NCBI GenBank assembly: GCA_964247055.1 | Contig: OZ176057.1 | Span: forward strand, 310,001-374,000 | From: Paragordius varius | Taxonomy: Eukaryota; Animalia; Nematomorpha | Length of the DNA: 64,000 nucleotides | Reading direction: 5' to 3' | In this document: positions 1-63,100 of the stretch, piece after piece | Numbering within the stretch: position 1 is the first letter of the stretch | Layout: each line of letters opens with the position of its first letter | Position numbers and translations under genes: made by a program | The notes under the pieces: generated by a model | Told to the model about the DNA's origin: nothing | The model's database searches: none | Seen by the model: only the letters and a program-made list of their open reading frames with translations

Positions 1-60
1 TGTTAAACAAGGAGCGTTTACAATTTCATATTTCCTATTAAAACATCGTTATTATATATA

Positions 61-293
61 CCATTTGGAATTCAAATTCACCCTCAAATAAATATTTTTT
101 TAATAGAAAAACTACCAATATTTTTATATATTTTTAAAAAACAAAAACTTTGTTGAAATTAAAATAACAATGAAAAATAAGAAACTATACCATAAAAATA
201 TATTCTATATTAATAATGAGTTATATTTCGAAAACATATAATTTATTTTGGGGTGAATTTAAATCCTTCAAGGGTGAATTTGAACTGTAATGG
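61..293. mobile_element. MITE with ~24-bp imperfect TIRs, TA-flanked (Tc1/mariner-type)
   Basis: Left TA|CCATTTGGAATTCAAATTCACCCT; right AGGGTGAATTTGAACTGTAATGG|TA. Related copy at ~14881-15147 and a fragment at ~51280-51320. Confidence 0.7.
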
Positions 294-445
294 TATATAT
301 AAGTAAGTTGGTCAATTATAAAAATAATTATCCCTTACCTTTTATTATGGCTTGGAAAATTTTTCTCTAATGCATATTTTGTAAATAATTTGATTAAAGT
401 TAAAATCTTTTACGATCCTTAGTATCTACTGTATATAATTCATAC

Positions 446-3400
446 CCAGTAATACAGATATCTCCATGGTATCCAACATTGTTAATCAAATCAAGTTCAG
501 AATCATTATTTAAGCAATCATTTATATAATTTTGTTGGTTTAGTAGTTGGATAACTTTGCGTTTATGTTCCGTAAAGGTATTTATTAATCCCTCATTCAA
601 ACCCTTTAAAGAAATGTATTGCGTTGACGTGATAGCACTTGAATGCAAACAAGGCAGGTTAGCATTTTGAGATTCGCGAATAGCAAAACCTAAGTAAAAA
701 TTAACATTGAAATGGCAAAATAAAATTATTAATAATAAAACTTATCTCCCTTGTTTATAGATTAATTTCGAAAAATTTGCGCAAAACTAGATAAGAGATT
801 AAAGCACAAATAATAAAATTTTAAAGTCTAAAGTTAATATAGAACTGTAATATAAAAATTATATAAGGTTGTCAATTTTAGTTATGAGATTAGCCAAATT
901 CATTTGCCCTTATTTGATTTAGCAAATTACTGACTCTAAACAAAAAATAATTTTGGGATAATGCAATCTATTATGCTTTAAATTAAGGATGTATGATTAA
1001 ACATAATTTTCCCTTTACTATATTTTAAGCCTTAGCTCTCCAAATTTTACTTTAAAACGATTAATTTTAATATGTTAGGTTGAAAATTATAACCAAAATA
1101 AAATAATCAATAATACAGGTAAAATACTTTTTGCAGTTTCATAATGCGAATCTTGGATATGAATAGAAACGTTATAACACAAATATTCTTCTTCCGTTAA
1201 AATAGATAATTTAAAGTTGTGTCGTTTGTCTGTAAAAAAAAACATTCAACAAAATGAAATCATCGTAAAGTAAAGACATTATATATAAAAATTGTCTATT
1301 AAATAACTTTTTTAAAATGTCAAAAAATTTATTTTAATCATATCAAAATTATTTAATTTATATTATTATAATTAAATTTTATACCTGATATAGCATTTTT
1401 GTCTCGAGAAGACTGTTGAATCATAATAGGTGACAATTTATAATCCAAAATTTTGGATGACACGTCCAAAATTTTTAAAATTTTTATGGCACCTGTCGAT
1501 TTTTGCAATTCACGGGGCGCATACGTTAAATAAGCGATCGTAAGGGTGTATTTATCATTAAAGCCCTCATCTTCGATATGTGAATTACTATCTTTGAATC
1601 CAATATTTTTGGGTAAGCCCCCGACAAAAGTTAAAAGACACCTTGAACAATCAGTTTCTTCTAATGGCCTATAAGTAATAAAAATGATATAAATAAAATT
1701 AAATTAAGCGCAGAGTTAACATAAAAGGTAGAGTAAATACAAAATTATAAATAATAGAAATAAAAAACTACTTATATTTTATTATAAAACAATATTTTTG
1801 ACATAAAAATTTTCCTATATAACATGGCAAACAATTTACATCTTTATTGTTTTAGCAATTCAAATTAGAGATCGTAGAAGGCTGTCTAAAAAAATAGAAA
1901 AATCCTTTAATTTTTATGTTTTGTCCTTAAAATAAAAAGGCAATATTGTTTAAACCCTTTTTCGGGTATATGTCTAGAATCAAATTACACGCCTTATATC
2001 TCAACCTTTATGGAATTATAGTTAAAATTTGTATTTCTTACATTTTAGTGAATTTTATTTTTCAATTAATTATAACAAAAATTTTTAGATAAAAGCGATA
2101 TAAAGAGAGTATTTAGTTTTATATAAAAGACAGATAAGGTAGCTGTATATACATAAAATTAATTGACTTACTTGATGAGAGGATATGTTCGTAACTTTGA
2201 CATTGGGTAAATATCAGGAGTACCTTCACAAAAGTATCAAGAAAACATATTAAACATCATAAAAAATTTAAAATGAAAATTTAAAAAAAGCTATATACAC
2301 ATACCAAAAGGCCATATCGGACCATATTGTTGGAGATGCGTAGTACTAAGATTTATTAAAGGAAAATTATTCGTTTGATAAATCCATTTAAGAGAATTCG
2401 AATTTGGATTAGCTTTGCATTCCTCGATGTTGAGTTGTTTAAGCAAAATGTCGTCAATTAAATCACCCGAAGTCGAAATGCAATCCTCCCTTCGCGTTGA
2501 TAATATGTCATCTTTTTTTAACAAAGTTTCATCTTTACTCAATTTACGTAAACTTTCGTAAAAATTAGATTCTTGACAATTCCTTGTTTTTCCTGCAAAC
2601 CAAACATTTAAGGAACCTTTTGCACTGACGGTCATGAAGGAATTTAAACTGTAAAAAGTTGGAGCAAATGAAACCAGATCCTAAATAAAATGAATATATT
2701 GAAAAAAACGGCTTTTTCATTTATATCGAATGAAAGCCTTGAAATTTATAAATCTTATTTTTATCATATATAATATAGGAATATTGTATGTTAAAAGAAA
2801 TGGATTTATCGCGATTAATATAATAAAAATATAGAAATCCTTATATCTTATTTTTAATTTTAATTCCATATACAAATGTTAACATATAAACTGTAAATTG
2901 CCAGAAAATTAATCATAACCCATTAATACCATTTTTATTATAAAAAACACTGTAAAATGAGATTAGAACAATAATTCGATTTCGACTTATAACGTAAAAA
3001 CTGACATTAATATAAAAACCGCATTTAATAATTTTTAGAGGTATTCATAAGGCATATTATTTATTTTTAAACAAAAATATTAAAATTAATTATAGTTATA
3101 AACGAATTCAAATATATAATTATATTTTATGGTTTTTTTAAAAAAGGATTTTGGAATAGTTAAGATAGGTAATTTTAAATATTTCATTTATAAGATTAAA
3201 TATTATTGAAATAATTTTTTAATATTATACAGTAAAATATGTAATTATCCGTACGAATTTTTTAACTAACGGACATAATTTTTTTATAAGAGACAGAGTG
3301 TTAAAATCAAAAGATTATAATTTTTAATTGGCGGACAAATTTTTTATTATACGGACAAATTTTTTTTTAACGGACAAATTTTTTTTTATACGGACAAATT

Positions 3401-6400
3401 TTCGATTATACGGACAAATTTTTTTTTATACGGACATAAATCCGAAATATAATAGGGTAAGAAGAGCACTTATTATATAACAATTCTCAACATTTCTGCC
3501 ACTCAAGTTTGCAATTTTTGATATTTAGTATCATTCTAACAGTAAGTCTAAAATAAAAATTATAAATCCTTGTAAGAATTTTGTATAATTTGATATTTTT
3601 GATTATGCGCCCTCTTTATCAAAATTTTACTAAATGTTTTTATTTGAAAATATACAAGTAATGCCCATTTGTAATATAAAAAAGTAATAAAAACTTAAAA
3701 TGTATACTAATATGTATTACATTGACAGTTATTATTGGACACAGATAGCTACAAACGCGCGAAGCGAGAGCATTTTTTTAATTAATATATCTTTAAAACT
3801 AATGGATGAAAATAGCTCAAACTTTGTTTAGTTGGTGATGAATGTCAAAAAAAGATAACCCAAGAAAGTTTTTGTTTGTGAAATAATTTTTTTATTCTTT
3901 TATGTCACTCAAAACAGCCATTTTTCGGTTTTTTGTTTTTTAAAAATTACCATATCATCAATAATAATTTAGGCTGATTATTTCGAAATTTAAAGATTAA
4001 ACCAACGTTTAAGGTATTATTGATCTTTTATAGCCATTTACAGTTATAACTATGCATTTTAGGATCCACTAGGTAAAATATTTATGATAGTAATAAAAAA
4101 AACCAAACCAAAAGCTTTTCCAAACATTTTTGTTTAAATTAAATACTAATATAACCCTAATAATTATATTAAAATAATTTATATGATTTTCAAATTAGTT
4201 TGTCTGTGAAAATTCTTGACTTCTTATGGGATAGAAAATTTCGACCATTTAAATCCAAATAACTTTTATATCCGATTGATATAAATGACTTATTACCATT
4301 AAGATGCAGTGTTTTGCGCTCTTTCGAATGATATAAAATACATGGTTTCATATCTAAAACTTTTAATTTTCAAAATTTCGAGTTTAATGTTAAATCGGGG
4401 CCAAAAATTATCGATAAACCTAATATTAAAAAAATATTGAATGCTAAACCAATTCTCTTTTCAGATATACTAATTATGTACATTTACAAGAATGGCAGTT
4501 AAATAAAGTTAAAATTTGTTTTCTAGTGTAATATTGATAAATAATAACTCTTTGAATTCTAGTCGGCTAAATGTTTACTTTGTATTTTAGAAGCTTTAAA
4601 ATTATAACATAGCAATTGATTTTCACCGACTTAAGAATAAACCATTTTTTATTTAATGTTATTTATTATATTAAATGAATAGGATTTAATAAATATCGCA
4701 TTTAACTAAGGCAAAATATTATTTCATGCATTATTAACACCAATCATACTGTCATCTATTTGTAAAATTTTAAAAAACCTTATCATAACTATATTCATTT
4801 CAAAGAAACTTTTTTACTACTGAAAAAATAATAATCCAATTTTTCATTATATTAATCTTATTTTAACAATGTTTCCAATCTTATAATAAGGTTTAATCGA
4901 AAACAATAGTCTAATGGGCTTCTACACTGACTGTATTTTTAGATTATGTATCATATCAACTCTCTCTATTATATTGTTAGGTGGGACAACTTTCAATTTA
5001 CGACAAGATGGGACTCTTCTTAATATTAAACATCTACCGCATAAGCTCAATAAGCAGACGAGTAAATACTAATCGTCTGCTTTTAACATCAATTATAACT
5101 GCAATATAATGTAATAGAGAAAATAATTTATTAAAATAATATGAAAATAACATCAATATAAATAAATAGTAAAAAAATAAATAATGGTGAAAAAAATAAA
5201 AACACTAATAAATGCCTTTAAAAATTTTTATGTGCGAAAACAGTTACTGATTAAGCCTATGGATCGCAATAAATTAGAACGGGAACAAGTTTTACAGTTT
5301 TTTTACAGTAATGAAGAGATTTCCAACTATTAAATATATGCCTGCGGTTGAAATATAAAATATTTGATGATGATTTATAATATAATATTTTAATCATCCC
5401 ATACATTATAAATAATGTCTATACACCGTATTATCTAAATAAGAAAATGATATTAGCTATGAAAAAATAGATCCAACTTAAATGATTCACAACAAAAATC
5501 ATATGAATTTTCAGGTAATAAATTTAATTTTTTTAAACAAACATTATTTAATATTTTATCTACATGTTCATAATATTTACTTAAATCCTTATTATAAAAT
5601 ATTTTAGAAACTTCTTTTATATTTTTATCCATATTTAAATCTTTCTTATTAAGAGCTCGTAATTTGTGTTTAAATTCATGGAAAATACACTCAATAGGAT
5701 TTAATTGAGGTGAATATGGTGGTAAAAAAATTAAATTTTCGAATTCTTTATTTCGAGAATAACGATGAATAGGGGCATTATCCAAAATTATATAGGATGT
5801 TAAAGGTATTATTTTAAAACATTCCTGTAAAAAATGATATATATCATCCCCATTGTATGGGTCAGATTTATATTCATATTTTATCATTCCATTTATTCCA
5901 ATCATAGCCAAATAGTTTATATTTTTACCTCTTGGCTTACGTTTAATCGTAGGAAATTCTCCCTTTTTACACCAACAATATAAATAAAGACTGTAATCAT
6001 TGATTCCAGTCTCATCCATATAATATATGTCGCTGTGCAAAAACTGTAAAACTTCCCACGCATAAGTATACCTATGCTCTATTATTTCTATTTTATTGCG
6101 ATTTATAGGCTCAATCTGAGCCTGTTTTCTTACAAAAGAATTTTTTTTAAGCATTTATATAATGTAGTTTTTGATATTTTTTATGAATAAGGAATAGAAT
6201 CTAAAATTTCATCAATTGTGATATTATTATTTTCATTTAAAATATTTTCTATGGCTTCCTTTAATTTACAATCATCATATTTTGGCTTGCGGCCACTTTT
6301 TTTAGGTGGGATGTGAAGGCCGACGTTCAATCGCCTGCGATATTTATAAATTGTTGATCTGGACATTTTTAAAATGTTCATATTGTCCGTCATAGTATTA

Positions 6401-9400
6401 TTCGAAGTGGACGGATTACTGAAAAGGCTCTTAGCAATTTCATTCTTTTCATTTGTCCAACTTCCTCTGCCTTAACCAAATATTCACAAAGAATTTATTA
6501 TTTTAGATAGTTGAATAAACAATTCTTATATATAACTGGTAATTTATTATATTATTTTATTAAATTTTTTAAAAGTTATTGATTCAATCGGAATAATGTA
6601 ACTAGAATACCTTTATTAAAATAAGGCGGAAGAATCAATTTACTTATGTAACTATATTAAAATTTGCAAGATTTTCATATAAATATGTTAAATATAATAT
6701 CTAGACTATTCCCACTTGAAATAATTATTTTAAATAACGTCGATCTCAAACCTTGATATAAGTTTTAAGAATATATGCAAAAATATTTAAAGGAAATTAT
6801 GTCGCATAAAAACACAAAAAGATACTAGAGCTAGCACAATGGTATTATGGAATATAATATAATTTGAAATGTATATACGTTTTCTTTGACGAATCGTATC
6901 ATCTTGGTTGTTTTCTGAACATATAGATGAAGATGGCGATGACGGTGAGAATGATGGTGAGCGTATAATTGAACGATTTTCTGTACAATCATCATAGAAA
7001 TCTAAAGGTGAAATTAAATTTTACCATAGGTGTGATCCATTAATAATAATTACTATAGGCCGAATAAAGAGTATTAAATATAGATATTGTTAAAGTATAT
7101 TAAAAGTGATTAAATTAAGATGAAAAGACTATGGGTACACGTAAAAAAATAATCAATAGTTAATAAATTATTATAAATTAAAATTGATTATATTTAAGAT
7201 GAAAAGATTATGGGTACAAAAAAGAACAAAATAATTAATTAATAAAATTAAAAAATACATATATTTACCGTATGCATATTATTGGTAGTCAATTTACTTT
7301 ATTTTTTGCTCCCGTTTGGTGATAGTTGCGTATTGATTAAAACATGAAATAGTTAAATTTACATATTTTTTTATCTTACAACCATAATTAAATATTTAAA
7401 TACGGCCAAATTTATTTTATATTATAAACTAGTGTATTATCATAAGTCAAATATAAAAATGGAATTAGGTACCGAATATGAGTTCATTTTAATGAACCCC
7501 CCTGTCAAAAAACCTAGTACACATATCAAATTTCGAAATTTTTTAATTTTATTAATTAATTATTTTGTTCTTTTTTGTAATAATCTTTTCATCTTAAATA
7601 TAATCAATTTTAATTTATAATAATTTATTAACTATTGATTATTTTTTTACGTGTACCCATAGTCTTTTCATCTTAATTTAATCACTTTTAATATACTTTA
7701 ACAATATCTATATTTAATACTCTTTATTCGGCCTATAGTAATTATTATTAATGGATCACACCTATGGTAAAATTTAATTTCACCTTTAGATTTCTATGAT
7801 GATTGTACAGAAAATCGTTCAATTATACGCTCACCATCATTCTCACCGTCATCGCCATCTTCATCTATATGTTCAGAAAACAACCAAGATGATACGATTC
7901 GTCAAAGAAAACGTATATACATTTCAAATTATATTATATTCCATAATACCATTGTGCTAGCTCTAGTATCTTTTTGTGTTTTTATGCGACATAATTTCCT
8001 TTAAATATTTTTGCATATATTCTTAAAACTTATATCAAGGTTTGAGATCGACGTTATTTAAAATAATTATTTCAAGTGGGAATAGTCTAGATATTATATT
8101 TAACATATTTATATGAAAATCTTGCAAATTTTAATATAGTTACATAAGTAAATTGATTCTTCCGCCTTATTTTAATAAAGGTATTCTAGTTACATTATTC
8201 CGATTGAATCAATAACTTTTAAAAAATTTAATAAAATAATATAATAAATTACCAGTTATATATAAGAATTGTTTATTCAACTATCTAAAATAATAAATTC
8301 TTTGTGAATATTTGGTTAAGGCAGAGGAAGTTGGACAAATGAAAAGAATGAAATTGCTAAGAGCCTTTTCAGTAATCCGTCCACTTCGAATAATACTATG
8401 ACGGACAATATGAACATTTTAAAAATGTCCAGATCAACAATTTATAAATATCGCAGGCGATTGAACGTCGGCCTTCACATCCCACCTAAAAAAAGTGGCC
8501 GCAAGCCAAAATATGATGATTGTAAATTAAAGGAAGCCATAGAAAATATTTTAAATGAAAATAATAATATCACAATTGATGAAATTTTAGATTCTATTCC
8601 TTATTCATAAAAAATATCAAAAACTACATTATATAAATGCTTAAAAAAAATTCTTTTGTAAGAAAACAGGCTCAGATTGAGCCTATAAATCGCAATAAAA
8701 TAGAAATAATAGAGCATAGGTATACTTATGCGTGGGAAGTTTTACAGTTTTTGCACAGCGACATATATTATATGGATGAGACTGGAATCAATGATTACAG
8801 TCTTTATTTATATTGTTGGTGTAAAAAGGGAGAATTTCCTACGATTAAACGTAAGCCAAGAGGTAAAAATATAAACTATTTGGCTATGATTGGAATAAAT
8901 GGAATGATAAAATATGAATATAAATCTGACCCATACAATGGGGATGATATATATCATTTTTTACAGGAATGTTTTAAAATAATACCTTTAACATCCTATA
9001 TAATTTTGGATAATGCCCCTATTCATCGTTATTCTCGAAATAAAGAATTCGAAAATTTAATTTTTTTACCACCATATTCACCTCAATTAAATCCTATTGA
9101 GTGTATTTTCCATGAATTTAAACACAAATTACGAGCTCTTAATAAGAAAGATTTAAATATGGATAAAAATATAAAAGAAGTTTCTAAAATATTTTATAAT
9201 AAGGATTTAAGTAAATATTATGAACATGTAGATAAAATATTAAATAATGTTTGTTTAAAAAAATTAAATTTATTACCTGAAAATTCATATGATTTTTGTT
9301 GTGAATCATTTAAGTTGGATCTATTTTTTCATAGCTAATATCATTTTCTTATTTAGATAATACGGTGTATAGACATTATTTATAATGTATGGGATGATTA

Positions 9401-12400
9401 AAATATTATATTATAAATCATCATCAAATATTTTATATTTCAACCGCAGGCATATATTTAATAGTTGGAAATCTCTTCATTACTGTAAAAAAACTGTAAA
9501 ACTTGTTCCCGTTCTAATTTATTGCGATCCATAGGCTTAATCAGTAACTGTTTTCGCACATAAAAATTTTTAAAGGCATTTATTAGTGTTTTTATTTTTT
9601 TCACCATTATTTATTTTTTTACTATTTATTTATATTGATGTTATTTTCATATTATTTTAATAAATTATTTTCTCTATTACATTATATTGCAGTTATAATT
9701 GATGTTAAAAGCAGACGATTAGTATTTACTCGTCTGCTTATTGAGCTTATGCGGTAGATGTTTAATATTAAGAAGAGTCCCATCTTGTCGTAAATTGAAA
9801 GTTGTCCCACCTAACAATATAATAGAGAGAGTTGATATGATACATAATCTAAAAATACAGTCAGTGTAGAAGCCCATTAGACTATTGTTTTCGATTAAAC
9901 CTTATTATAAGATTGGAAACATTGTTAAAATAAGATTAATATAATGAAAAATTGGATTATTATTTTTTCAGTAGTAAAAAAGTTTCTTTGAAATGAATAT
10001 AGTTATGATAAGGTTTTTTAAAATTTTACAAATAGATGACAGTATGATTGGTGTTAATAATGCATGAAATAATATTTTGCCTTAGTTAAATGCGATATTT
10101 ATTAAATCCTATTCATTTAATATAATAAATAACATTAAATAAAAAATGGTTTATTCTTAAGTCGGTGAAAATCAATTGCTATGTTATAATTTTAAAGCTT
10201 CTAAAATACAAAGTAAACATTTAGCCGACTAGAATTCAAAGAGTTATTATTTATCAATATTACACTAGAAAACAAATTTTAACTTTATTTAACTGCCATT
10301 CTTGTAAATGTACATAATTAGTATATCTGAAAAGAGAATTGGTTTAGCATTCAATATTTTTTTAATATTAGGTTTATCGATAATTTTTGGCCCCGATTTA
10401 ACATTAAACTCGAAATTTCGAAAATTAAAAGTTTTAGATATGAAACCATGTATTTTATATCATTCGAAAGAGCGCAAAACACTGCATCTGAATGGTAATA
10501 AGTCATTTATATCAATCGGATATAAAAGTTATTTGGATTTAAATGGTCGAAATTTTCTATCCCATAAGAAGTCAAGAATTTTCACAGACAAACTAATTTG
10601 AAAATCATATAAATTATTTTAATATAATTATTAGGGTTATATTAGTATTTAATTTAAACAAAAATGTTTGGAAAAGCTTTTGGTTTGCTTTTTTTTATTA
10701 CTATCATAAATATTTTACCTAGTGGATCCTAAAATGCATAGTTATAACTGTAAATGGCTATAAAAGATAAATATTACCTTAAACGTTGGTTTAATCTTTA
10801 AAATTTCGAAATAATCAGCCTAAATTATTATTGATGAGATGGTAATTTTTAAAAAGAATAAAAAAATTATTTCACAAACAAAAACTTTCTTGTGTTATCT
10901 TTTTTGGACATTCATCACCATCTAAACAAAGTTTAAGCTATTTTCATCCATTAGTTTTAAAGATATATTAATTAAAAAAAATGTCGCTTCGCGCGTTTGT
11001 AGCTATTCTGTGTCCAATAATAACTGTCGATGTAATACATATTAGTATACATTTTAAGTTTTTATTACTTTTTTATATTACAATGGGCATTACTTGTATA
11101 TTTTGAAATAAAAAAATTTTTTAGTAAAATTTTGATAAAGAGGGCGCATAATCAAAAATATCAAATTATACAAAATTCTTACAAGGATTTATAATTTTTA
11201 TTTTAGACTTACTGTTAGAATGATACTAAATATCAAAAATTGCAAACTTGAGTGGCAGAAATGTTGAGAATTGTTATATAATAAGTGCTCTTCTTACCCT
11301 ATTATATTTCGGATTTATGTCCGTATAAAAAAAAATTTGTCCGTATAATCGAAAATTTGTCCGTATAAAAAAAAATTTGTCCGTTAAAAAAAAATTTGTC
11401 CGTATAATAAAAAATTTGTCCGCCAATTAAAAATTATAATCTTTTGATTTTAACACTCTGTCTCTTATAAAAAAATTATGTCCGTTAGTTAAAAAATTCG
11501 TACGGATAATTACATATTTTACTGTAATATTTTAAAGGATTCTAATATTGTTTAGTTAAAGTTTATTATAAAATAGGGAGGAGCCAACTTGATATACATT
11601 GAATATGGTGTTTTTAAAGACAACCAGTCATACTTTTTAACAATATAATTTTTATGGTAAAATATATAATTTGTTTTCTCAACTTATTTAATTTTACAAC
11701 GCAAAACAATAGGTTAAATTATTAAAACAAGGGTAACTTTATATCTAAAAATTTCTCTCTATATAAAAAAGTATACCTCTGAAAAGATATAATGTGTCGG
11801 TAATTGAATTTTAGTGTCCAAAAATATGAGGAGAGAATTACAAACTATGATGAGATAAGGATATTGGTAATGATCACGAGAATCTTTCATCCAATCAAAA
11901 TTTGCATCACTTTCCAGGAATTGCTCACAAGACTTTTCCTTGTCGTAATAATGCAAAAACTCCATTTGTGTTATAGATAGGCAACCAGTTGTTGTTTTGT
12001 GATGAATCATTTGTTTAAGTTTACTATTTAAAAAATAAAATTCGGAAATTATGCTCAAAATGTAAATTATATCTATGTAAAACATTTAACAATTATTGTT
12101 ATATATACTTGCCCGACTATAAAGGAGTAATATTATTGGGTGAAATAATGTTTGAAAAAAAATTAATTTTAAGCATGTCTTTTATGTGAATACTATTTCA
12201 TATCAAATAAAACCCTATTTTTCCTGTTGTGTACATGAGTTAAAGCTAAAAGGCGCATGGGTTTTCTATAACAACCATATTTTATTAACGCTAATTTTAT
12301 TAATATAACCAATAATTTAGATGTAAATTGGCATCTCAACGATTGTAATTAACTAGTTTATATAGGAAAGGTTTTATATTTTTACGTTTTGTCCGTACAA

Positions 12401-14483
12401 TTTTAATTATTACACTGTTAATAAATGCAAGCTTATTCATTTTAAAGCAAAAAAAAGGTAGAAAGTATAAGTTTAACTCATTGTGTGAAAAATCCATAAT
12501 TTTGAGGAGAGATATGGTATGTATGTTTGACTGTTTATTAATATCATCATCAGAATTATTTTGGGTTAGATTTTTAGCGGAAGTGGTGTTTATAATATGC
12601 AAATCCCCGTTAGAATCCGCCACATATAAAAAAGTCGACCCAGGTGGTATCTTAGAGTCATGAAATGCTAAGCTGCTTGTAATTTTTGGGCAACAATTAT
12701 TCTTAGGAAAAGCAACTGCATTTTTACCATATCGATATTGGATTCGAGATTTTGGTTCAGGTTTTTCCATTAAATCCAATTGATTAACAACTTTCCTAGG
12801 GAAAAAAACAATCATATTTTAGAGTTGCACAGAGTGCGGAAAAAAGTGTTTATAAAAATGAAGAATCAAGTGATAACATACTAAAAAAAGAGTTATTTTT
12901 ATTTTATTAACCAAAAATAAAAAATGGCATTTTTTTCGCACAATAGGTCACATAAAAATAACACTAGACAAAAAAAACTTTAACGAAATCCTATTTGTAA
13001 ATATAAATTCATAAATATACTCAATTCAATGTTTTTAATTAGATTTTTATATTTTTAGAGGGTCATTTAAAGAGACCAGGATATAAGCTAATATTATGCG
13101 GTAAAAGATTATCGCATGAAATTTACCCAATATATCGCGTTAAAAGATAATATTTAGCTTATATGATAACAAATCTTGATATTTTATTCAAAAACCAAAG
13201 TATAGCTGCAAAAATTCAAAATTGTAATTAATTAATGATTTCCATGGTATAAAAACATGCATTGTCTCAAATCCTTTGATTTATAGAGTTTTTATAACCA
13301 ATGTTGGGAGACGATCTAAAGATCATACACATCAATACATATTCTCATGCAATCAAACACTATCCAATCATTTAATTCTTAGATAAAAACACTAATTTTC
13401 ACTATAGCTGGGCAATCGACAGTTGTATATGGAATAAAATAAACAAAGTTATATATTAGAAAGGGAGAAATCGTTTATTCAGTATTTTGTTGTTTTTTTC
13501 CATACATTACTGTAAATATTCAGGTATATAACAAAATATGAATTAAAACTTTTAAACCCTAAATTAAAACCGAGTCAATCATTTTTTTGTGCATTTTATA
13601 GGAAAAATATTTATATATATAATTAAAATCATTTTTGGGGTGATTTCGGGTAAACTTAAATATATGATACAATAAAAAGTGAAATTATACGGACAAAACG
13701 TAAAAATATAAAGGAATATACTTTTTATAATGGAAAACATATACTTTATTTAAGCCATTTAGTTACAATAGTAAAATATAAAAATGATTATGTTAGATAT
13801 ATATATATATCTCTATTCCAGATTTTAATATATAAAACAATGAGTTATATTGATATAAATCAATATTTAAAAAATATGGTTGCCTTTTAGAAAAAAATAT
13901 TTGTCATTATATTTTTACATTTTGTCCGTATAATTTCAGTTTTACTGTAATAAAAATTAAAATGTTTTACCGCATAATAGCAAATAGAAAATTTTATATG
14001 TGGGATTTTTAATAAATTAATAAATGTAGTACTTTATAAACCCTCTAAAAATTGTAAAATTTTCATCGAAATATTTTGCTCTTAAACCATCTTTATGGAG
14101 TATTTTGGTTATAAAAAAATTTTGTTGACACGCCTTTCTCTAATTAAATAACCTAATGTGCGACGAAAATGCGTTTTTTGGGGTTATATAATTTAAGAAA
14201 AAAAAATTTTTTTATAAAAAAGATAGCCTTTTGCGAAAAAGCAATGCATCTGCAATTCCTAATTATATATGTTTCACAGTTGTAATGCTATTATAAAAAG
14301 CGAATAAATATTGTTTACTTTACGAAACTCTTTTTAATATTTGCGTGTTGTCTTAAAAATTATATTTTATTTCTTGTTCCAACTATTAGGTCAATTCAAT
14401 TTAATTGTTAAATTATAATATATAAATTCGAATTAAGTTGTTAGTACAATTATAAAAATGAAACATAAAAAGTAATAAATAGT

Positions 14484-14541
<58 letters not shown>

Positions 14542-15742
14542 GAAAAAAAACGGATATTTTTTGTAATTTTTGATAATCCATTCCATTACTGATATAATTT
14601 AATTAGTTTAATTAGAATGCTTGAAAATATGGATGTTTATGCTAAACTTATCTTAAATTAAAACATATTTAACCTCAAATCGTATATATATTCGATGAAA
14701 AAACAAAATACCTGATGGGCACATTAAAAATATTCAACAATTTCAAGATTGGGCACTCGTTGGGATTTTCAGAATGGCGATCAAGAACACAAATCTCATA
14801 ATGATAAATGCAGTTGTTTGTTCCAACAATAAAAACTTCATTCTGTTCATTATTATAATAAAATATAAAATTTTGCATTGGCTTATATTACAGTTCGAAT
14901 TCATCCTTGAACAATTTAAATTCACCATCACCCTCGAACAATTCAAATACCCACTAAAATTAAATTATGTGTTATCGAACCTTAATATAACTCATTATTA
15001 ATATGAAACATATCTTTATGGCATAGTTTATTGTTTTTTCAGTATTTTAAAACAATATTTTATTTTTAAAAAATATTAAAAATATAGGCAATTTTTAATC
15101 TTAAAAAATATATAATTATTTAAGGGTAAATTTAAATTGTAAATGGCTTGTTGTTATTTTTATCTTTTCATTATAATTATGTTACTGGCAAATTTAAATG
15201 AAAAAAAAACTAATGCATTTTTTACAACGTATTAATTATAATGTGATTTATGGAATTGGTTTATAAAGGAGTTATGTCTAATAATCATTCAGAATATGTC
15301 GTGGAAAAAAGCAATTCTTATCAAAGACAGCAAATTTTTTTATATTAAAAAAGGAATTGAAATATTAAGATACCATTTTATCCAAAAAATCAATTTAGGT
15401 CTGTTTAAAATTAAAATAAAACTTATTCCAAACATAAACAAAATAACTCTTTAAAAAATGTAGATCTTCTAACGTTAAAAAATTCACATATATAAATTAT
15501 TAAACAATTGCAATGTTATAATTATAACCTTTAAAGAAACTAAACAAATCATTGTTACACCAACTGAATCTGCAGGTAAATATGTTTCTATTTGACGACC
15601 ATCAAGATATCTAAAATAGTAATCAAAAAAGTTACATTCTAATAAGCCCATCTTTAGTGCCAATCACCAATAATTTTGCTATTGCATCATATTCAAAAGC
15701 AGATGGTTTTAATGGATAACCGACATCGCCATCAAAATTAAA
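446..15742 (-). CDS. Lethal(2) giant larvae / tomosyn (LLGL/STXBP5) family WD40 protein, multi-exon; both ends unresolved
   Basis: Phase-compatible GT-AG exons: 15742-15636, 15610-15529, 14842-14712, 12795-12478, 12023-11777, 2680-2305, 2223-2172, 1668-1385, 1229-1128, 689-446(?). Family motifs occur in the correct order: GYPLKPSAFEYDAIAKLLVIGTKDGLIRI (cf. GFPYQPSALAFDPVQKILAVGT), FLYVADSNGDLHIIN (cf. WLYVGTERGNIHIVN), YGPIWP, LLTFVGGLPK (cf. FSGGMPR), LSILTEEEY (cf. LAVLLEEEL), LPCLHSSAITS (cf. LAPLHSSAITC), ICITG (cf. LLLTGHE). Lgl versus tomosyn cannot be decided without the C-terminus. Confidence 0.85.
3331..3440 (+). repeat. Subterminal array, 6 x ~20 bp (CGGACAAAT core)
   Basis: CGGACA at 3332, 3352, 3371, 3391, 3411 and 3431. 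Confidence 0.9.
4970..5360 (+). pseudogene. Decayed, internally deleted paralog of the element's own transposase, in opposite orientation (mirror at ~9431-9821, -)
   Basis: AATGCCTTTAAAAATTTTTATGTGCGAAAACAGTTACTGATTAAGCCTATGGATCGCAATAAATTAGAA...GTTTTACAGTTTTTTTACAG aligns to the transposase's TGCTTAAAAAAAATTCTTTTGTAAGAAAACAGGCTCAGATTGAGCCTATAAATCGCAATAAAATAGAA...GTTTTACAGTTTTTGCACAG. Similarity upstream of ~5190 is weaker. Confidence 0.7.
5453..6393 (-). pseudogene. IS630/Tc1-family transposase, left copy, split into HTH ORF (6181-6393) and DDE ORF (5453-6154)
   Basis: MSRSTIYKY...KKSGRKPK (HTH and linker); YMDETG, ILDNAPIH, FLPPYSPQLNPIE (DDE). An in-frame TAA and a -1 frame offset at an A8 run separate the two parts. 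Confidence 0.9.
6787..7040 (-). CDS. Mirror copy of the candidate 76-aa passenger gene
   Basis: Reverse complement of 7751-8004; intron 7002-7024. Confidence 0.55.
7751..8004 (+). CDS. Candidate 76-aa orphan passenger protein (Ser/Pro-rich, basic RQRKR, hydrophobic C-tail)
   Basis: Exon 7751-7766 (ATG GAT CAC ACC TAT G), 23-nt intron 7767-7789 (gtaaaatttaatttcacctttag), exon 7790-8004. Product: MDHTYDFYDDCTENRSIIRSPSFSPSSPSSSICSENNQDDTIRQRKRIYISNYIIFHNTIVLALVSFCVFMRHNFL*. Confidence 0.55.
8398..9338 (+). pseudogene. IS630/Tc1-family transposase, right copy (ORFs 8398-8610 and 8637-9338)
   Basis: Proteins identical to the left copy, with the same TAA (8608-8610) and TT-A8-TTC (8641-8653). 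Confidence 0.9.
11314..11423 (-). repeat. Mirror subterminal array, 6 x ~20 bp
   Basis: Reverse complement of 3331-3440. Confidence 0.9.
13670..13947. mobile_element. 278-bp MITE (CAGTAAAA family), TA-flanked
   Basis: Left TA|CAATAAAAAGTGAAATTATACGGACAAAACGTAAAAATATA; right end reverse-complements to CAGTAAAACTGAAATTATACGGACAAAATGTAAAAATATA, followed by TA. Confidence 0.85.
14487..14534. repeat. (AT)n microsatellite, ~24 units
   Basis: Seen directly. Confidence 0.95.
14881..15147. mobile_element. Degenerate MITE related to 61-293
   Basis: Repeated TTCAAATTCACCCT-like motifs at left; AAGGGTAAATTTAAATTGTAAATGGC at right. Confidence 0.5.
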
Positions 15743-16169
15743 CTGAAAATCGTGGGGATTTTCGTTTTGATGTGTTTTTTGTTGTTTTAATACCTTTAAC
15801 AGCTGAAGCATGGGTAACGTGCATGTATGGTAATATTTCCACAGGACGAAAATTTAATATTGTACAAAAATTTAATATTAGAATATTTTGTCCTATGAAT
15901 GTTAAAATATAGTTAAAAGAATAAATCATATTAAACATCCACTTGCATTTTATACCACCATTTTTGAAAAGATATTAATACATTAACGTAGCATTATTAT
16001 ATTATTGAAACTATAGTTTGCACTCCTAAATAAACATATTATTTCAACTACAATAGCTAGGCTACTTAATTTTCTGCTATATTTATGCTGTTCAATTTAT
16101 CAGTAATTAGCAGGTAGATTTTCTATACCATACTTTTAATTATCTAATAACGGTAAAAATAACCTCTAT

Positions 16170-40731: not shown

Positions 40732-42557
40732 GCGGTTTTATTTGGTTGCAAAGCAATATGGTTGGACATATTTTGCGGTTTTTTAATTGTAAAGCATATC
40801 GACGGTTATTTATAGGATATGGTAGAGGTGGGTAAAGGACAACTTTGTCGGTTTTGTAGATTTTATAAAATATGCTTTTAAATTAGCAGGGTGGCGGTTT
40901 TATTTGGTTGCAAAGCAATATGGTTGGACATATTTTGCGGTTAATTGTAAAGCATATCGACGGTTATTTATAGGATATGGTAGAGGTGGGTAAAGGACAA
41001 CTTTGTCGGTTTTGTAGATTTTATAAAATATGCTTTTAAATTAGCAGGGTGGCGGTTTTATTTGGTTGCAAAGCAATATGGTTGGACATATTTTGCGGTT
41101 TTTTAATTGTAAAGCATATCGACGGTTATTTATAGGATATGGTAGAGGTGGGTAAAGGACAACTTTGTCGGTTTTGTAGATTTTATAAAATATTGTTTTA
41201 AATTAGGGGGTGGCGGTTTTATTTGATTGTAAAGCAATATGGTTGGACATATTTTGCGGTTTTTTAATTGTAAAGCATATCGACGGTTATTTATAGGATA
41301 TGGTAGAGGTGGGTAAAGGACAACTTTGTCGGTTTTGTAGATTTTATAAAATATGCTTTTAAATTAGCAGGGTGGCGGTTTTATTTGGTTGCAAAGCAAT
41401 ATGGTTGGACATATTTTGCGGTTTTTTAATTGTAAAGCATATCGACGGTTATTTATAGGATATGGTAGAGGTGGGTAAAGGACAACTTTGTCGGTTTTGT
41501 AGATTTTATAAAATATTGTTTTAAATTAGGGGGTGGCGGTTTTATTTGATTGTAAAGCAATATGGTTGGACATATTTTGCGGTTTTTTAATTGTAAAGCA
41601 TATCGACGGTTATTTATAGGATATGGTAGAGGTGGGTAAAGGACAACTTTGTCGGTTTTGTAGATTTTATAAAATATTGTTTTAAATTAGGGGGGTGGCG
41701 GTTTTATTTGATTGTAAAGCAATATGGTTGGACATATTTTGCGGTTTTTTAATTGTAAAGCATATCGACGGTTATTTATAGGATATGGTAGAAGTGGGTA
41801 AAAGACAACTTTGTCGGTTTTGTAGATTTTATAAAATATTGTTTTTTAGGGGGGGTGGCGGTTTTATTTGATTGTAAAGCAATATGGTTGGACATATTTT
41901 GCGGTTTTTTAATTGTAAAGCATATCGACGGTTATTTATAGGATATGGTAGAGGTGGGTAAAGGACAACTTTGTCGGTTTTGTAGATTTTATAAAATATT
42001 GTTTTAAATTAGGGGGTGGCGGTTTTATTTGATTGTAAAGCAATATGGTTGGACATATTTTGCGGTTTTTTAATTGTAAAGCATATCGACGGTTATTTAT
42101 AGGATATGGTAGAGGTGGGTAAAGGACAACTTTGTCGGTTTTGTAGATTTTATAAAATATTGTTTTAAATTAGCGGGTGGCGGTTTTATTTGATTGTAAA
42201 GCAATATGGTTGGACATATTTTGCGGTTTTTTAATTGTAAAGCATATCGACGGTTATTAGGATATGGTAGAGGTGGGTAAAGGACAACTTTGTCGGTTTT
42301 GTAGATTTTATAAAATATTCTTTTAAATTTGGGGGGTTGCGGTTTTATTTGGTTGCAAAGCAATATGGTTGGACATATTTTGCGGTTTTTTAATTGTAAA
42401 GCATATCGACGGTTATTAGGATATGGTAGAGGTGGGTAAAGGACAACTTTGTCGGTTTTGTAGATTTTATAAAAATTTCTTTATAATTAAAAGGGTGGCC
42501 GTTTTATTTGGTTGCAAAGCAATATGGTTGGACATATTTTGCGGTTTTTTAATTGTA
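40732..42557. repeat. Tandem array of a ~161-bp unit, ~11.4 copies
   Basis: Unit starts at 40732, 40894, 41052, 41213, 41375, 41536, 41698, 41858, 42019, 42180, 42339 and 42498. Confidence 0.97.
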
Positions 42558-57160: not shown

Positions 57161-60100
57161 TTAGATAGAGCATACAACACAAGGTATTTCACGACCATCG
57201 GGATATTCCGAACAAGGCAAAGAACCGCATTTTGTTTCAACCAGAAAGAGAGCGGTTCCTTCACCAAACGTATTTTCAGGCAAATCGTAGGCTTCTGGTT
57301 CTTCATCCACGCAAATATAACTGGTGCGAGAGTTGTGTAATCCTTCATATTTTTCTCTAGACTTGCCTTCTTGAGTCGAAGGAAAATTAGAAATGGCAGA
57401 GGATGAGGCCATCAAATAGCCTTCATATTCAAGATGCCAAGCGTCCGAAGGACATTTGCTCATAGCCGGAAACATTATATTTTCTGATCTTCCTTGAACC
57501 CGACATAGAACACATACAGATCCACTGCGAGCTAAAGCTGACGTTCCAAATCTATCAGGAGCAATGGGTTTTGGGGCATTATGCTCCCGGTGGCGCCTTG
57601 TTTCATCTCGGGGATTCACTTCATTGTTATGAGAGTTTGATTGAAAACGCCTGCTTTCAGGACGCCGCAAAGTGTTGTAGGAAAAGGGTTGGGAGGATTG
57701 CCTTTTGCTCCTACGCGATCTTTCGTTCCTATTGGCATTTTGGGTAAAAATTCGAATCCTATACTCTGTTCCATATATAGTTGCATGAGATTGGAATCCT
57801 GGCACGTGCTCTTTCCATGTGGGTTTGCTCGGAAAACACAAAAAATTGGAACCGCTATCTCCCTGATTGAAGTGACCTCCAGCAATATAACCTAAAATAT
57901 AATTAAATCGTTACCGTCATATATTTTTTGACTACCAGATCTGCATTCACTTCTTCCCCAACGTGTGTAGATCGTGGTTAAATACTGTGAAAAATCTTTG
58001 GGTGCTTCTCTGCTTATGATTGTTGGAACAATATCTTCTAAAAATCAATTTATTACAGTAAAAATTGAAAATATACCGACAAAAACGTAGAAACAGTAAG
58101 ACTAATATTTTTTTAAAAAACCGCTATACTTTTTTAAAATTATTTTTTTTATCATAACTCATTGTACGCTGTAAATTATGAGATAGAGATGTAAATTGGT
58201 AAGATAGTCAGTTATATTAAAATTGTAATTAAATAGTTTCTATAGGAAAGCTTAAGCTTTAGAAGTATGATTATCCCTCGAAAAAATATTTGAATTTTAC
58301 TTTTTACGTTTTGTCTGTATAATTTCAATTTTTAATCTATAACTGATTTATTCATTACTAAAAAACAGTAGTCAAATTTATATGAGGTAAAAATTACTTT
58401 TAAACGATTTGTCCCAATCCTCATGGGCATCAGGGAATTCGGTATAACAGCCTTTTTCGCAGTATCCAGGCTTACCTGGGAGACCGGGAAGACCGGGCTC
58501 ACCCGGTGCCCCTGGTAATCCCTTGTCCCCCTTTTCGCCCGGCCATCCTGGGGCGCCAATATCCCCCTTCGATCCTGGAGAACCATCTTTCCCATTCCTT
58601 CCAGGTGCTCCTTGCCGGCCTGGCTCTCCTGGCCAACCAGGTAATCCTATACTTATGAAATAATGACAAAAAAGGTTAGGTAACAACAGAGTAAACTTAA
58701 ATCAAAATTACGAAAAAATGATTATGACCAAAACTTGATGGGTTACTGTGGATAATTTTGACACCTACGTTTGCATAATTTTTTAAGGACAATGTCTATT
58801 TTCATAGTATTTTATCGTATTTAAAAATTATATGGGCTCTGAGTTTTAAACCCGTAATAATTTTTAGGGATTTAATCAGCTAGGAAGTTAATATAAATAT
58901 TTATGCCTTTATCCCCAGGCGCTCCCGGAACGCCATCTTTTCCTGGTTTCCCGTGAGGTCCGATGTCTCCAGGATATCCAGGCTTTCCAGGTTCTCCTAT
59001 TAGACCAGGGTCCCCTTTATGGCCCTAAAAAATATAAATTACAATTTAGCCATCCATGTTGAATGATTTAAAATTATTTATGAGCAGTTACTGGTAATCC
59101 AGGTAATCCCGATTCCCCATCTTTTCCAGGCCATCCAGGCTTTCCTATCGGTCCTGGTTCGCCAGGCGGTCCTTGAGGCCCATCTTTTCCGTCAAATCCA
59201 GGGGGGCCGATTGCACCCTTAAAAAATATTATTAATATATGGATAATGAAAAAAATATGGTATAGGGATATTGTTTTCGTGCATATATATATATATATAT
59301 AATATGTATATATATTTATATTTGCTTTTATAAAGAATTACTGGCTCCCCTGAAGATCCAGGCAATCCGTCTTTTCCCGGCCAACCAGGTGGACCTGGCA
59401 AACCATCTTTACCAGGAACTCCGTCAACTCCATTCAGTCCATCTTTTCCAGGTATTCCAGATGGGCCCTCAAAAGAAACATCAATATAGTAATGTAATAC
59501 AGTATAACAAATAGAATTTAGATTTTGATGCATATCTGCTATATTTCAACCTAACTCCTAAAAATAGTACTATAACTTTGTGATAGTAATAAATATATAA
59601 ATACTGGCAGTCCTGGTGCTCCAGGAGGCCCAGGAAGCCCTTCAAGTCCTTCTTTTCCGGGCAAACCATCTTGACCTGGCGCGCCATCATGACCTTTATC
59701 ACCGGGTTGTCCTGGGTCTCCATGTGGACCCTAATCATGAAGCAAATAAATACAGTTATGATTGGGTTTTTGCCAGTTTAGTTATAATAACCGGCCAACC
59801 GCTTATGAATGCAGTATATATGGTCATAAGTCATATTAATCAAAAGAATAAAATATATGTTGATGGTCATAAGTCATATTAATCATAAGAATAAAATATA
59901 TGTTGTTACCAAACCAAATAAAACTAATTGAATTTTTTTACAGTCGCAATATGATAAGTAATTCTAATTTATAATTATATGGTATTGAAAATTTCGAGTA
60001 CTTTATATGAATATTAGTAAATACATGTTTTTTTCAGTTAGTTTTTATAAACGGTCATATAAGTCAGACTCAACCCTAATTACGGTATCAAATTTGTCGA

Positions 60101-63100
60101 AAACAAGTATAATTCATACCCTGTCTCCTGGAGGTCCCGGACTACCGTCTCGACCCGGAGATCCCGGCATTCCAGGCTCACCATCTTTTCCCGACCAGCC
60201 AGGGAGCCCTTCTTTACCATCCAATCCTGGGGGACCTGGATCTCCCTAATGATATATGCACTTTATGAGTATGAAATTAAGTTTGTGTAAATTTGTTAAA
60301 AATTCACCGGATGTCCCTTTTCTCCAGGCAAACCAGGCGGCCCAGGAAGACCAGGCACTCCATCATTCCCGTCACGTCCTGGGATCCCAGGGATTTTTTC
60401 GAGTTGCGTCAATCCAGGATCGCCCTTTTCACCCTAAGATGATCAAATTGAAAAAAAAATAAAAATGGTTAAGCAATGAATAACTGTATACCTTTGGCCC
60501 TGGTGGACCTGGCCAGCCATCTTTTCCAGGCGGTCCCGGAACACCATCCTTTCCGTCCCAACCCGGTTTCCCAGGTTCACCTGGAATCCCTGGGGGCCCC
60601 TTGGGACCTTTTTCTCCCTACATTTTTATTAAATAAATTATTTTTAAATAGAATAAGATTGAAAATATACAGACAAAATGTAAAAATTAAACAAAATTTT
60701 TTAAAAAGACAACTATGCTTTTTAAAGCTTGTTTCGTTTTTACTGCAAACTTACTAATCACAATTTTAAATATATAATTGTGTGTTGCTTATGTGACCTC
60801 TTTTTGTGCTGCCCTAAAAAACGAAATTTAAAAAATGTAGTTGTTTTTAAAAAAAATATTTAACTTTTTAATTTTTACTTTTTGTCCATATATTTTCAAT
60901 TTTTAGTATAGAAGAATGAAATATTTGTATACTTACTTGTATGCCCTTATCACCCGGAACTCCGTCTAAGCCAGGCGGTCCAGGAGGACCCGAACTTCCA
61001 GGCCTTCCGTCATGACCATCTTTTCCTTCCCATCCTGGGGGACCTCGTAATCCTGGTGGTCCCTTCATTTTAAATGGAGTTATTGTTCGTAAGATTAGTA
61101 ATATATTGACTTTAAATGAATCAAATACATACTCTTTCTCCAGGTTTCCCATCAATCCCATTTTTACCAGGCCAACCATTTTTCCCGTCTTTTCCATCTC
61201 TACCGGGCGCGCCATCTTTGCCCGGATATCCGTCTTTTCCAGGCAAACCGTGCGGACCGCGCATACAATTGCTTCCTTTGCAGTGGGATCCGCCACTTCC
61301 TCCGCCAACTTTGCATTAATTAAAACATCAGTCATATACATTCGAACCTTTTCTTTTTGTAAATTGACCCTTTTTTATTTATCAGTATCCCTTTTTTCGC
61401 GCAAAATTCTGTGACTTTTTTTTATAAAACCATGGTAAAAATAAATTTAAATTATGTTTAATATTTATTCGAAAATTGCACTATAAATAGGATAGATTTT
61501 ATTATCTTTAAAAACATATATGATTACCAATCACAAATAAATTCATTTTAACTTAAAAACCTTTATTTTTTTATTTTGTAACTTGAAAATATTTTGTACG
61601 GATTATTCTTCCGCATAAATTTTTTATTGCCAATATAAAATAATCATTATTTATGATTGACCTTTTTTGCCATTTTTTGCGACCGTGTCTCGTACAAAAA
61701 GAGTTTTGGCTCTAAAAAAATAATTAAAATTGAAACTCCTCTTTTAATATACAATTAATAATAAATTAGACTCTGAAAAATATATAAACTAGTAACTTCG
61801 AAACGCGGCCCATTTGATTTAAGCATTCTCTATTAAAAATAGGCAAATCTTAATTACTTACGCCAATATTAAGTCAAAATTGTAACTCTTTTTATTATTA
61901 TAGTAATTACATTATAATACAATGTAAAATCAACCAATATCTCATAATTTATTGGTACTTGCTAAAGTTATATTATAACACGATTTTATTTAAAATTTAA
62001 AGAATATGTTGAAAAAGTTAGTTTTTCGATATTATACGTTTTACATTCTTGAGTAAATATTTGGACAAATTAGAATTTTTATTGATCACTTCTATCATAA
62101 TGCGAAAAAATTTGTTATAATCACGGCATCAAGCATTTCATATCTCAAATTTATGAATATGATGACATAACGCAATCATTTTGTTGGCTAAATATTATAA
62201 ATTAGATTCCCTGAGCATTTAAAATGTTATAATAAAATTAATGCCACAACAGTTGCCAATAATGTTTAACTCGATATTAAATCCGTCATATTTCCCATTC
62301 GTAAGGGTTATAATTAACTTAAACTTCATACGCATATACACTTGAACGCAATCATAAAGGAACAAATTTTATGAACGAGCCAATACGATTAAAAATACGT
62401 AATTTATGTTATTTGAGATATAAAAACATTAGGCTTTTACTTTCAGTTAATTAAATGTAAAAAGTTTCTTGGTTTTTTAAAAATTTTAAAACTTATTATT
62501 TGCACAACAAAATGTTTTAAACTAATTATCTTTAAATTATAAAATGTCTTATTAAAATAACGGAGACTGCCTAAAAACAACAATTTATTGAAAAACCCAG
62601 TAGCCCTTATAATAACTTTTAAAGTATGTAAAAGAAGCTAATATACTTCCCAAAATTCATAACAACCCATTTTTATTAGTATAAAGGTAGTAACGAAAAT
62701 TAAAAACAATAAATCCTACAGTCGTTTTATATAAACATATTTAATCGTAAATAAAGATAATGCAACAAAATATTAATTTCAAATTTTATTCACAGAAAAT
62801 CCAATCCAGATATTTATGCAAAATGAAACATTTTACTTTAAATTATCAAAAAGGAAAACTTACGCCAAGGCGGTCTTTCAAAACTTGTTGGTTCATCTAG
62901 AGCTGTGTCAGAGGGAGATTTGTCTTGCGAAGATGGCCGCAACCCCCAACCCCCGACTGTGCTTCCCAAAGATAGACCTCGGGCTTCAAAATTAAAGTTT
63001 TCATGTTTGCTAATTTGTCCGTCATTCTTTTCTTCGCTGAACCCTAACTGCGCCGCAGGTTTGGGATTTGGTTGATCAACACTTTTTTCCTTTCGGGAAT

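Follow-up and report, generated by a model that had tools for sequence, protein, structure and literature searches.

The palindrome and its parts

Analysis of a 64,000-nucleotide (nt) stretch of the Paragordius varius genome (the window; positions 310001-374000 of contig 8, in a 110.6-Mb assembly of 44 contigs) revealed a long, near-perfect palindrome. The whole 8,295-bp palindrome is a single Tc1/IS630-type DNA transposon, and it is positioned in a putative intron of a minus-strand gene that resembles the Lgl family. Coordinates refer to the window unless a contig is named. The element consists of the following parts.

3228-3229, unstranded: TA target-site duplication, left, from a sequence reading of the ends
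3230-11524, unstranded: palindromic Tc1/IS630-type DNA transposon, non-autonomous copy, 8,295 nt, with TA and conserved termini at both ends
3230-7242, minus strand: left arm, transcribed second in a host-sense pre-mRNA, with the transposase gene in sense
7243-7548, unstranded: central spacer, asymmetric, the would-be hairpin loop
7549-11524, plus strand: right arm, transcribed first in a host-sense pre-mRNA, antisense to the transposase
5453-6471, minus strand: transposase pseudogene of the left arm
8320-9338, plus strand: transposase pseudogene of the right arm
10263-11276, plus strand: nested ~1-kb insertion of a separate high-copy repeat in the right arm, with its mirror at ~3478-4528 in the left arm
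11318-11422, unstranded: subterminal 20-nt direct repeats, 5.3 copies (105 nt), with a mirror array at 3332-3436, ~100-200 nt from the ends
11525-11526, unstranded: TA target-site duplication, right, from the same reading of the ends

A repeat search of the window found three inverted-repeat blocks, at 3986-7242/7549-10805 (3257 nt, 99%), 3213-3644/11110-11541 (98%), and 3773-3901/10852-10980 (97%). The blocks are collinear and form one palindrome whose arms are separated by 306 nt. Global alignment of the arms gave 4041 columns with 20 mismatches and 8 gap events (53 nt in total, one of 39 nt). Five of the 20 mismatches fall in the AT-rich flank, of which the repeat search had added 17 nt per side that are arm-like by chance; the window is very AT-rich, with a GC content of 24% around the palindrome. 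The element proper (3230-11524) carries 15 arm mismatches, all within 3636-4372 and its mirror 10419-11105, that is, in the outer ~1.15 kb, and over the inner ~2.87 kb the two arms are identical except for one 3-nt bulge. The substitutions between the arms show no transition or deamination bias and hence no signature like that of repeat-induced point mutation. Folding of the central 901 nt as RNA yielded -488 kcal/mol, compared with -144 +/- 7 kcal/mol for shuffles (z = -47). The near-perfect palindrome described in the initial annotation is thus borne out by the repeat search, the arm alignment, and the RNA fold, with its ends corrected and its loop enlarged from the claimed 7257-7537 to the measured 7243-7548.

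Identity of the element and its family

The assignment to a single Tc1/IS630-type element, with ~4-kb terminal inverted repeats that include the transposase gene, is based on the architecture, termini, spacer, and DDE_3 domain that it shares with other copies in the genome. The ends of the element read TA/CAGT...ACTG/TA. The sequence TA/CAGTAAAATATGTAATTATCCG... was found at both ends of the window copy and of at least 7 other copies, which have unrelated flanks. The 23-nt terminus occurs at 22 forward and 22 reverse sites in the genome, compared with 0 for a control pattern, and none of these 44 termini is located at a palindrome centre, so that only the outer ends carry termini. The subterminal 20-nt arrays are candidate transposase-binding sites.

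Each arm encodes a DDE_3 transposase (PF13358, 2e-22), and the two genes point outward from the palindrome centre. In an alignment with relatives of 22-30% identity, residues D127, D205, and E235 are invariant, and the spacing from the second D to the E is 29 residues, compared with 34-35 in most of the aligned relatives. Matches to N-terminal helix-turn-helix (HTH) domains were marginal, with HTH_17 at 27.6 bits (cut-off, 27) and other HTH models below the cut-off. A search of 5.8 billion proteins revealed Tc1-like and IS630-like proteins of Hydra, a myxozoan, a mite, microsporidia, and fungi as the closest relatives (29-35% identity). The other small open reading frames (ORFs) of the element (10308-10601, 7796-7960, and 9385-9607) had no Pfam match. 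Two further details of the transposase region were observed. The frame is open for 26 codons before its first ATG (8320-8397) and starts just after ...TTAAG, and this stretch may represent an upstream exon followed by a short intron. The DDE region is flanked by a ~90-nt inverted match of 75% identity (8610-8705 versus 9512-9601, mirrored in the left arm), which is also present in other copies.

The genome contains about 10 paired copies of the family, each with two inverted arms around a spacer of 300-360 nt. Three of them are full length, all sharing the same centre: the window copy and copies on contig 11 (1381090-1389479) and contig 3 (7586074-7594373). Shorter palindromic copies are located on contigs 1 (two loci), 2 (two loci), and 5 (one locus). 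The spacer of the window copy belongs to the element and is 89-98% conserved in five other copies.

The transposase frame of the window copy is interrupted by a TAA stop at 8608-8610, where the contig-11 copy has TTA, and by a 1-nt frameshift in an A-run at ~8641-8650. Both lesions are repeated in the left arm, and the translations of the two arms are identical; the DDE_3 domain is retained. The window copy is therefore non-autonomous, with intact ends. The contig-11 copy combines arms of 100% identity with an uninterrupted 339-codon frame in both arms (L004:2265-3281; 313 amino acids [aa] from the first Met) and is a candidate autonomous element. When the three full-length copies are compared, they share 99-100% identity in the transposase region and 87-98% in the non-coding parts around it. 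This pattern indicates that the enzyme has been under constraint and that the family is active now or was so recently. With regard to the surroundings of the other two full-length copies, long integrase- or reverse transcriptase-like ORFs were recognized by eye in their flanks (contig 11, 1389500-1399499; contig 3, 7576000-7585999), and both copies seem to be placed in repeat-rich DNA and not in a conserved gene.

The host gene and the putative intron

The candidate exons around the element are all located on the minus strand.

15635-15853, minus strand: N-terminal Lgl-like exon (...GYPLKPSAFEYDAIAKLLVIGTKDGLIRM), matching LLGL2 residues 10-46 with an E value of 0.0084 (Protein Data Bank [PDB] sequences)
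12339-12818, minus strand: exon candidate, 160-codon frame with a beta-propeller-blade-like motif (LYVADSNGDLHIIN)
11777-12085, minus strand: upstream flanking exon candidate, 103-codon open frame ending in ...THYIFSE
2681-11776, minus strand: putative intron of 9,096 nt, with donor GT at 11776-11775 and acceptor AG at 2682-2681, from sequence and frames
2294-2680, minus strand: downstream flanking exon candidate, 129-codon open frame starting with DLVSF..., with a likely donor near its 3' end

The initial annotation had proposed a 9096-nt intron between two phase-0 exons, and the locus reads as it stated, with strong coding frames on either side of canonical GT-AG dinucleotides. In minus-strand orientation, the donor reads ...TCA GAG/GTATAC and the acceptor reads TTTTATTTAG/GAT CTG (GTT, DLV...) at 2680; both exons would be phase 0. 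The exact 11777/2680 junction is a prediction from these signals and frames. Removal of the transposon and its TA duplication would leave an intron of about 799 nt. In shuffled sequence, 0.03 frames of at least 100 aa were obtained per strand in 7.7 kb, so that the 103- and 129-codon flanking frames are far above chance. Over 13 kb of the locus, ten frames of at least 90 aa are found on the minus strand, compared with two on the plus strand.

The host exons were compared with the databases one by one, not as a joined product, and the protein collections searched were without entries from this species. Downstream of the element and just outside the window, the minus-strand frame at 307506-307982 of contig 8 matched LLGL1 residues 577-614 (E value of 1.1, the sole match for that exon). 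The adjacent minus-strand frame at 307268-307486 of contig 8 carries MKKSLKKTLRQSFRRLRK and matched the aPKC-substrate peptide and LLGL1 residues 635-658 (E values of 0.012-0.07). The aPKC phosphorylation motif of the Lgl family (KSLKKSLRQSFRR) is thus present in the host gene, although the match is weak. Together with the N-terminal exon upstream, there are three LLGL matches, which are individually weak, yet collinear, on one strand, and bracketing the element. Because these matches lie on one strand and in the expected order on both sides, the host gene is read as a diverged Lgl orthologue, and the element is located within its transcription unit. The Lgl-type host named in the initial annotation agrees with these collinear LLGL1/2 matches upstream and downstream of the palindrome. 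Any intron joining both sides would contain the whole element.

Other searches with the host locus added little. The exon at 12339-12818 gave two weak matches in a HMMER search over 1.84 billion proteins, both to propeller repeat proteins, one of them a bacterial LVIVD protein; these matches are uninformative. Propeller-blade-like motifs are also present in other host exons. A search of PDB sequences with 1356-1703 was blank or gave noise. The Pfam LLGL (PF08366) and Lgl_C (PF08596) domains were not matched at the locus in a genome-wide exon-level search, which has low sensitivity on short diverged exons; Lgl_C was matched nowhere in the genome. The only Pfam LLGL match is located on the minus strand of contig 1 (9997554-9997688, 33.7 bits). 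This locus presumably represents a second gene of the Lgl/tomosyn family, and tblastx comparison of the host locus with it revealed no paralogy. The Pfam candidates KNTC1_N, UCH_1, and CagY for ten candidate host exons were rejected as sub-threshold noise, and KNTC1_N was also blank genome-wide. The ~20 nt that separate the two adjacent Lgl open frames (contig 8, 307486-307506) are compatible with an ultrashort intron.

Homogenisation of the arms

The arms of each palindrome are copied from one another, as indicated by several observations on the sequences of the copies. The first is that identity between the arms of one copy exceeds that between copies. Within-copy arm identity, based on mismatches, is 100% for contig 11, 99.9% for contig 3, and 99.5% for the window copy, with 98.8% and 97.8% in other younger copies. 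Between-copy arm identity is 91-96.5%, and left and right arms do not cluster by side. Furthermore, internal deletions in the contig-2 and contig-5 copies occur identically in the two arms. The nested ~1-kb repeat, of which the genome contains at least 25 copies at 82-83% identity, is mirrored likewise. It is inserted at TA, at mirror positions in both arms of five copies, whereas two contig-1 copies lack it in both arms and preserve the empty site. Two independent insertions at mirrored sites are not credible. The nested repeat itself had no Pfam match and no clear inverted ends.

Differences between the arms are found almost only in the outer part in three copies (window, contig 2, and contig 5). 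This distribution suggests homogenisation that would proceed from the centre of the palindrome, or else an influence of the nested repeat that is specific to this region. Arm copying might proceed by gene conversion or by fold-back repair in an extruded hairpin.

These features also argue against an assembly or amplification artefact. Inverted chimeras are known from some library types and would speak for a fold-back chimera. In the present case, both flanks are unique and bordered by a TA duplication, the spacer is asymmetric and conserved, the arms differ by 15 mismatches and a 39-nt indel, and the same architecture recurs at several loci that differ by 4-9%. An artefact was rejected on these grounds and is hardly conceivable.

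The predicted hairpin RNA and its possible fate

In the order of Lgl transcription, the right arm (antisense) would be transcribed first, followed by the spacer and the left arm (sense). In the pre-mRNA or the excised intron, the two arms could then pair as a ~4.0-kb stem closed by a loop of ~306 nt. The predicted stem contains 15 mismatches, a few 1- to 3-nt bulges, and one 39-nt bulge. It pairs base 11524 with base 3230 and leaves 252 nt on the donor side and 549 nt on the acceptor side unpaired. The initial annotation had claimed that every Lgl pre-mRNA contains both arms and can fold into ~4 kb of duplex. The geometry holds for a read-through transcript, and the word "every" depends on the predicted junction. 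Its further statement that pairing brings the two splice sites close together agrees with this geometry, which places them within about 800 nt of each other.

The two divergent transcripts of the element itself would have the same sequence and would not be complementary. Only transcription entering from outside would therefore produce double-stranded RNA (dsRNA). Of the 21-mers of the intact transposase ORF, 85% occur in the stem. The genome contains a Dicer_dimer domain at one locus and Piwi domains (Argonaute family) at two loci.

Taken together, we favour, with a probability of roughly 0.55, the following reading of the locus. A non-autonomous member of a low-copy palindromic Tc1/IS630-type family would have inserted at a TA in a ~0.8-kb intron of the minus-strand diverged Lgl gene. 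The read-through hairpin would likely be diced into small interfering RNAs (siRNAs) directed against the family, the intact transposase gene included. The copy would thus act as an incidental trigger resembling Mu killer or Tc1 read-through (see below), and not as one built by the host. The silencing role of the intronic palindrome is a conjecture within this reading. The phrase of the initial annotation that the host intron "forces" a hairpin does not describe the locus well, since the palindrome is the normal mobile form of the family in other copies, and nothing indicates a "built-in" or selected device.

Several observations weigh against an incidental, diced trigger in an Lgl intron. The exact junction is predicted from open reading frames and splice-site dinucleotides. 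The flanking exons at 11777-12085 and 2294-2680 had no detectable homologues among PDB sequences, and the latter was also without a match in the ESM Atlas and in a search of 5.8 billion proteins, neither of which therefore yielded a transcript-derived fragment across the junction. Read-through might be cut short by polyadenylation or termination signals within the AT-rich element. An essential gene might also suffer from 4 kb of dsRNA in its transcript, which would favour a young or polymorphic insertion over a functioning device. One family copy is still intact, with identical arms, and so the family is not obviously silenced. Finally, neither the ADAR deaminase domain (A_deamin) nor an RdRP domain was found genome-wide, in exon-by-exon matching that lacked a positive control and has little power on split exons. 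With no A_deamin match, the proposal of the initial annotation that the duplex is a substrate for A-to-I editing is less well founded.

The rival explanations differ in what becomes of the hairpin or in whether it is formed. The hairpin might be transcribed within the intron without any silencing, being unwound, lost with the lariat, or retained in the nucleus, or transcripts might end inside the element. Such an inert passenger would fit the apparent lack of RdRP and ADAR, within the limits of those searches, and a family that is apparently still functional; in addition, the left-arm transposase gene is in host sense, and its 3' signals could end transcripts early. On the other hand, Dicer efficiently processes long, perfectly paired intramolecular duplexes in those animals and plants that possess the pathway (PMC3878927, PMC10317233), and a transcript ending past the left-arm gene would still pair over ~2 kb. 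We consider the inert passenger unlikely, though worth serious attention. The opposite view, that the insertion is a silencer owned by the host and was retained because the Lgl promoter makes a constitutive hairpin trigger of RNA interference (RNAi) that holds the family down, draws, like the favoured reading, on the hairpin geometry, on the 21-mers shared with the intact transposase gene, and on the presence of Dicer and Argonaute genes. It also draws on the disabled state of the window copy and on its being, among the three full-length copies, the one in a conserved gene, where the flanks of the others look retroelement-like by eye. Such a selected silencer is improbable, as neither selection nor fixation is evident and an orthologous locus for comparison is lacking, and as an intact copy with 100% identical arms persists in a family whose transposase is under purifying constraint.

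A further alternative concerns the splicing itself. If the flanking frames were not spliced to each other, because the intron has other boundaries or the gene is decaying, not every Lgl transcript would have both arms. This alternative is in line with the lack of homologues of the two flanking exons, with the absence of Pfam LLGL and Lgl_C from the locus, and with the location of the sole LLGL match on contig 1. Against it stand the Lgl-specific motifs, which flank the element on one strand and keep the order expected for Lgl, and the long open frames, which at 24% GC argue for live coding sequence. Moreover, even a differently bounded intron would include the complete element if it joined exons across both sides. 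For these reasons, unspliced flanking frames are quite improbable.

Relation to known systems

The concept of silencing by read-through hairpins is already established from Mu killer, Tc1, and hairpin RNA (hpRNA) loci. Mu killer (Muk) of maize is an inverted duplication of mudrA for which a ~4-kb hairpin, produced by read-through from a flanking gene, has been proposed; the siRNAs silence the active element (PMC3440606). The window element resembles Muk in being an inverted duplication of transposase sequence that includes the target coding sequence and has high identity to the intact transposase gene of its family. Muk, in contrast, is a plant locus derived from MuDR (Mutator superfamily), rearranged and immobile, and its silencing has been shown genetically; the present palindrome is the ordinary mobile form of a Tc1/IS630 family, intronic and in an animal, and its silencing role is conjectural. 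For Tc1 of Caenorhabditis elegans, a member of the same superfamily, read-through transcripts from flanking DNA fold via the terminal inverted repeats and feed RNAi (PMC3878927). The Tc1 repeats span tens of bases and leave out the coding region, whereas the duplex predicted here is ~4 kb and comprises a whole transposase gene. In Drosophila, the hpRNA loci are long genomic inverted repeats that give rise to hairpins and endogenous siRNAs against selfish genes (PMC10317233). These loci are dedicated non-coding units derived from their targets, in contrast to a mobile element in a host intron.

Very long inverted arms are also known from Foldback transposons, in which the arms consist of tandem subrepeats and lack genes, and from the composite transposons Tn5 and Tn10, which carry a transposase gene per arm and in which each insertion sequence has its own two ends. 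The window element shares the long inverted arms with both and the transposase gene per arm with Tn5/Tn10. In contrast to Foldback elements, tandem repetition here is confined to the 105-nt subterminal 20-mer array and a few short arrays, and the arms encode transposase; in contrast to Tn5/Tn10, only the outer ends carry termini. A partial literature search found no described Tc1/IS630 element with long inverted repeats that contain the transposase, which is not proof of novelty.

The difference from the established systems would be that the trigger is an ordinary mobile member of a family of gene-bearing palindromes, that an essential animal polarity gene hosts it in an intron, and that its duplex would be renewed by homogenisation at the DNA level. 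If small RNAs arise from the intron, the locus would be an animal counterpart of maize Mu killer in which the trigger is a normal mobile copy. A more general proposal is that the family exists only as perfect palindromes whose arms are recopied from the centre outward, so that copies in expressed introns would be self-renewing Mu-killer-like triggers with a hairpin that never decays, linking a genome-wide tendency toward transposon palindromes to RNAi control. This generalisation is speculative and rather unlikely. Apart from RNAi, the family is a natural case for the creation and homogenisation of very long inverted repeats, with its mirrored insertions and deletions and its identity gradient from the centre outward. 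A further question that it poses is how 4 kb of intramolecular duplex can be tolerated in the pre-mRNA of an essential gene.

Other features of the window

An Rfam scan of positions 1-16000 gave no match. A tandem array at 40732-42557 consists of 11.4 copies of a 161-nt unit with 96% matches and has a strong skew of G over C; this array accounts for the GC-skew spike at 40-44 kb. The open frames at 57161-57841 and 60868-61341, on the minus strand, contain Gly-Pro-Pro collagen repeats and a Cys-rich C-terminal part and, by eye, represent a collagen gene.

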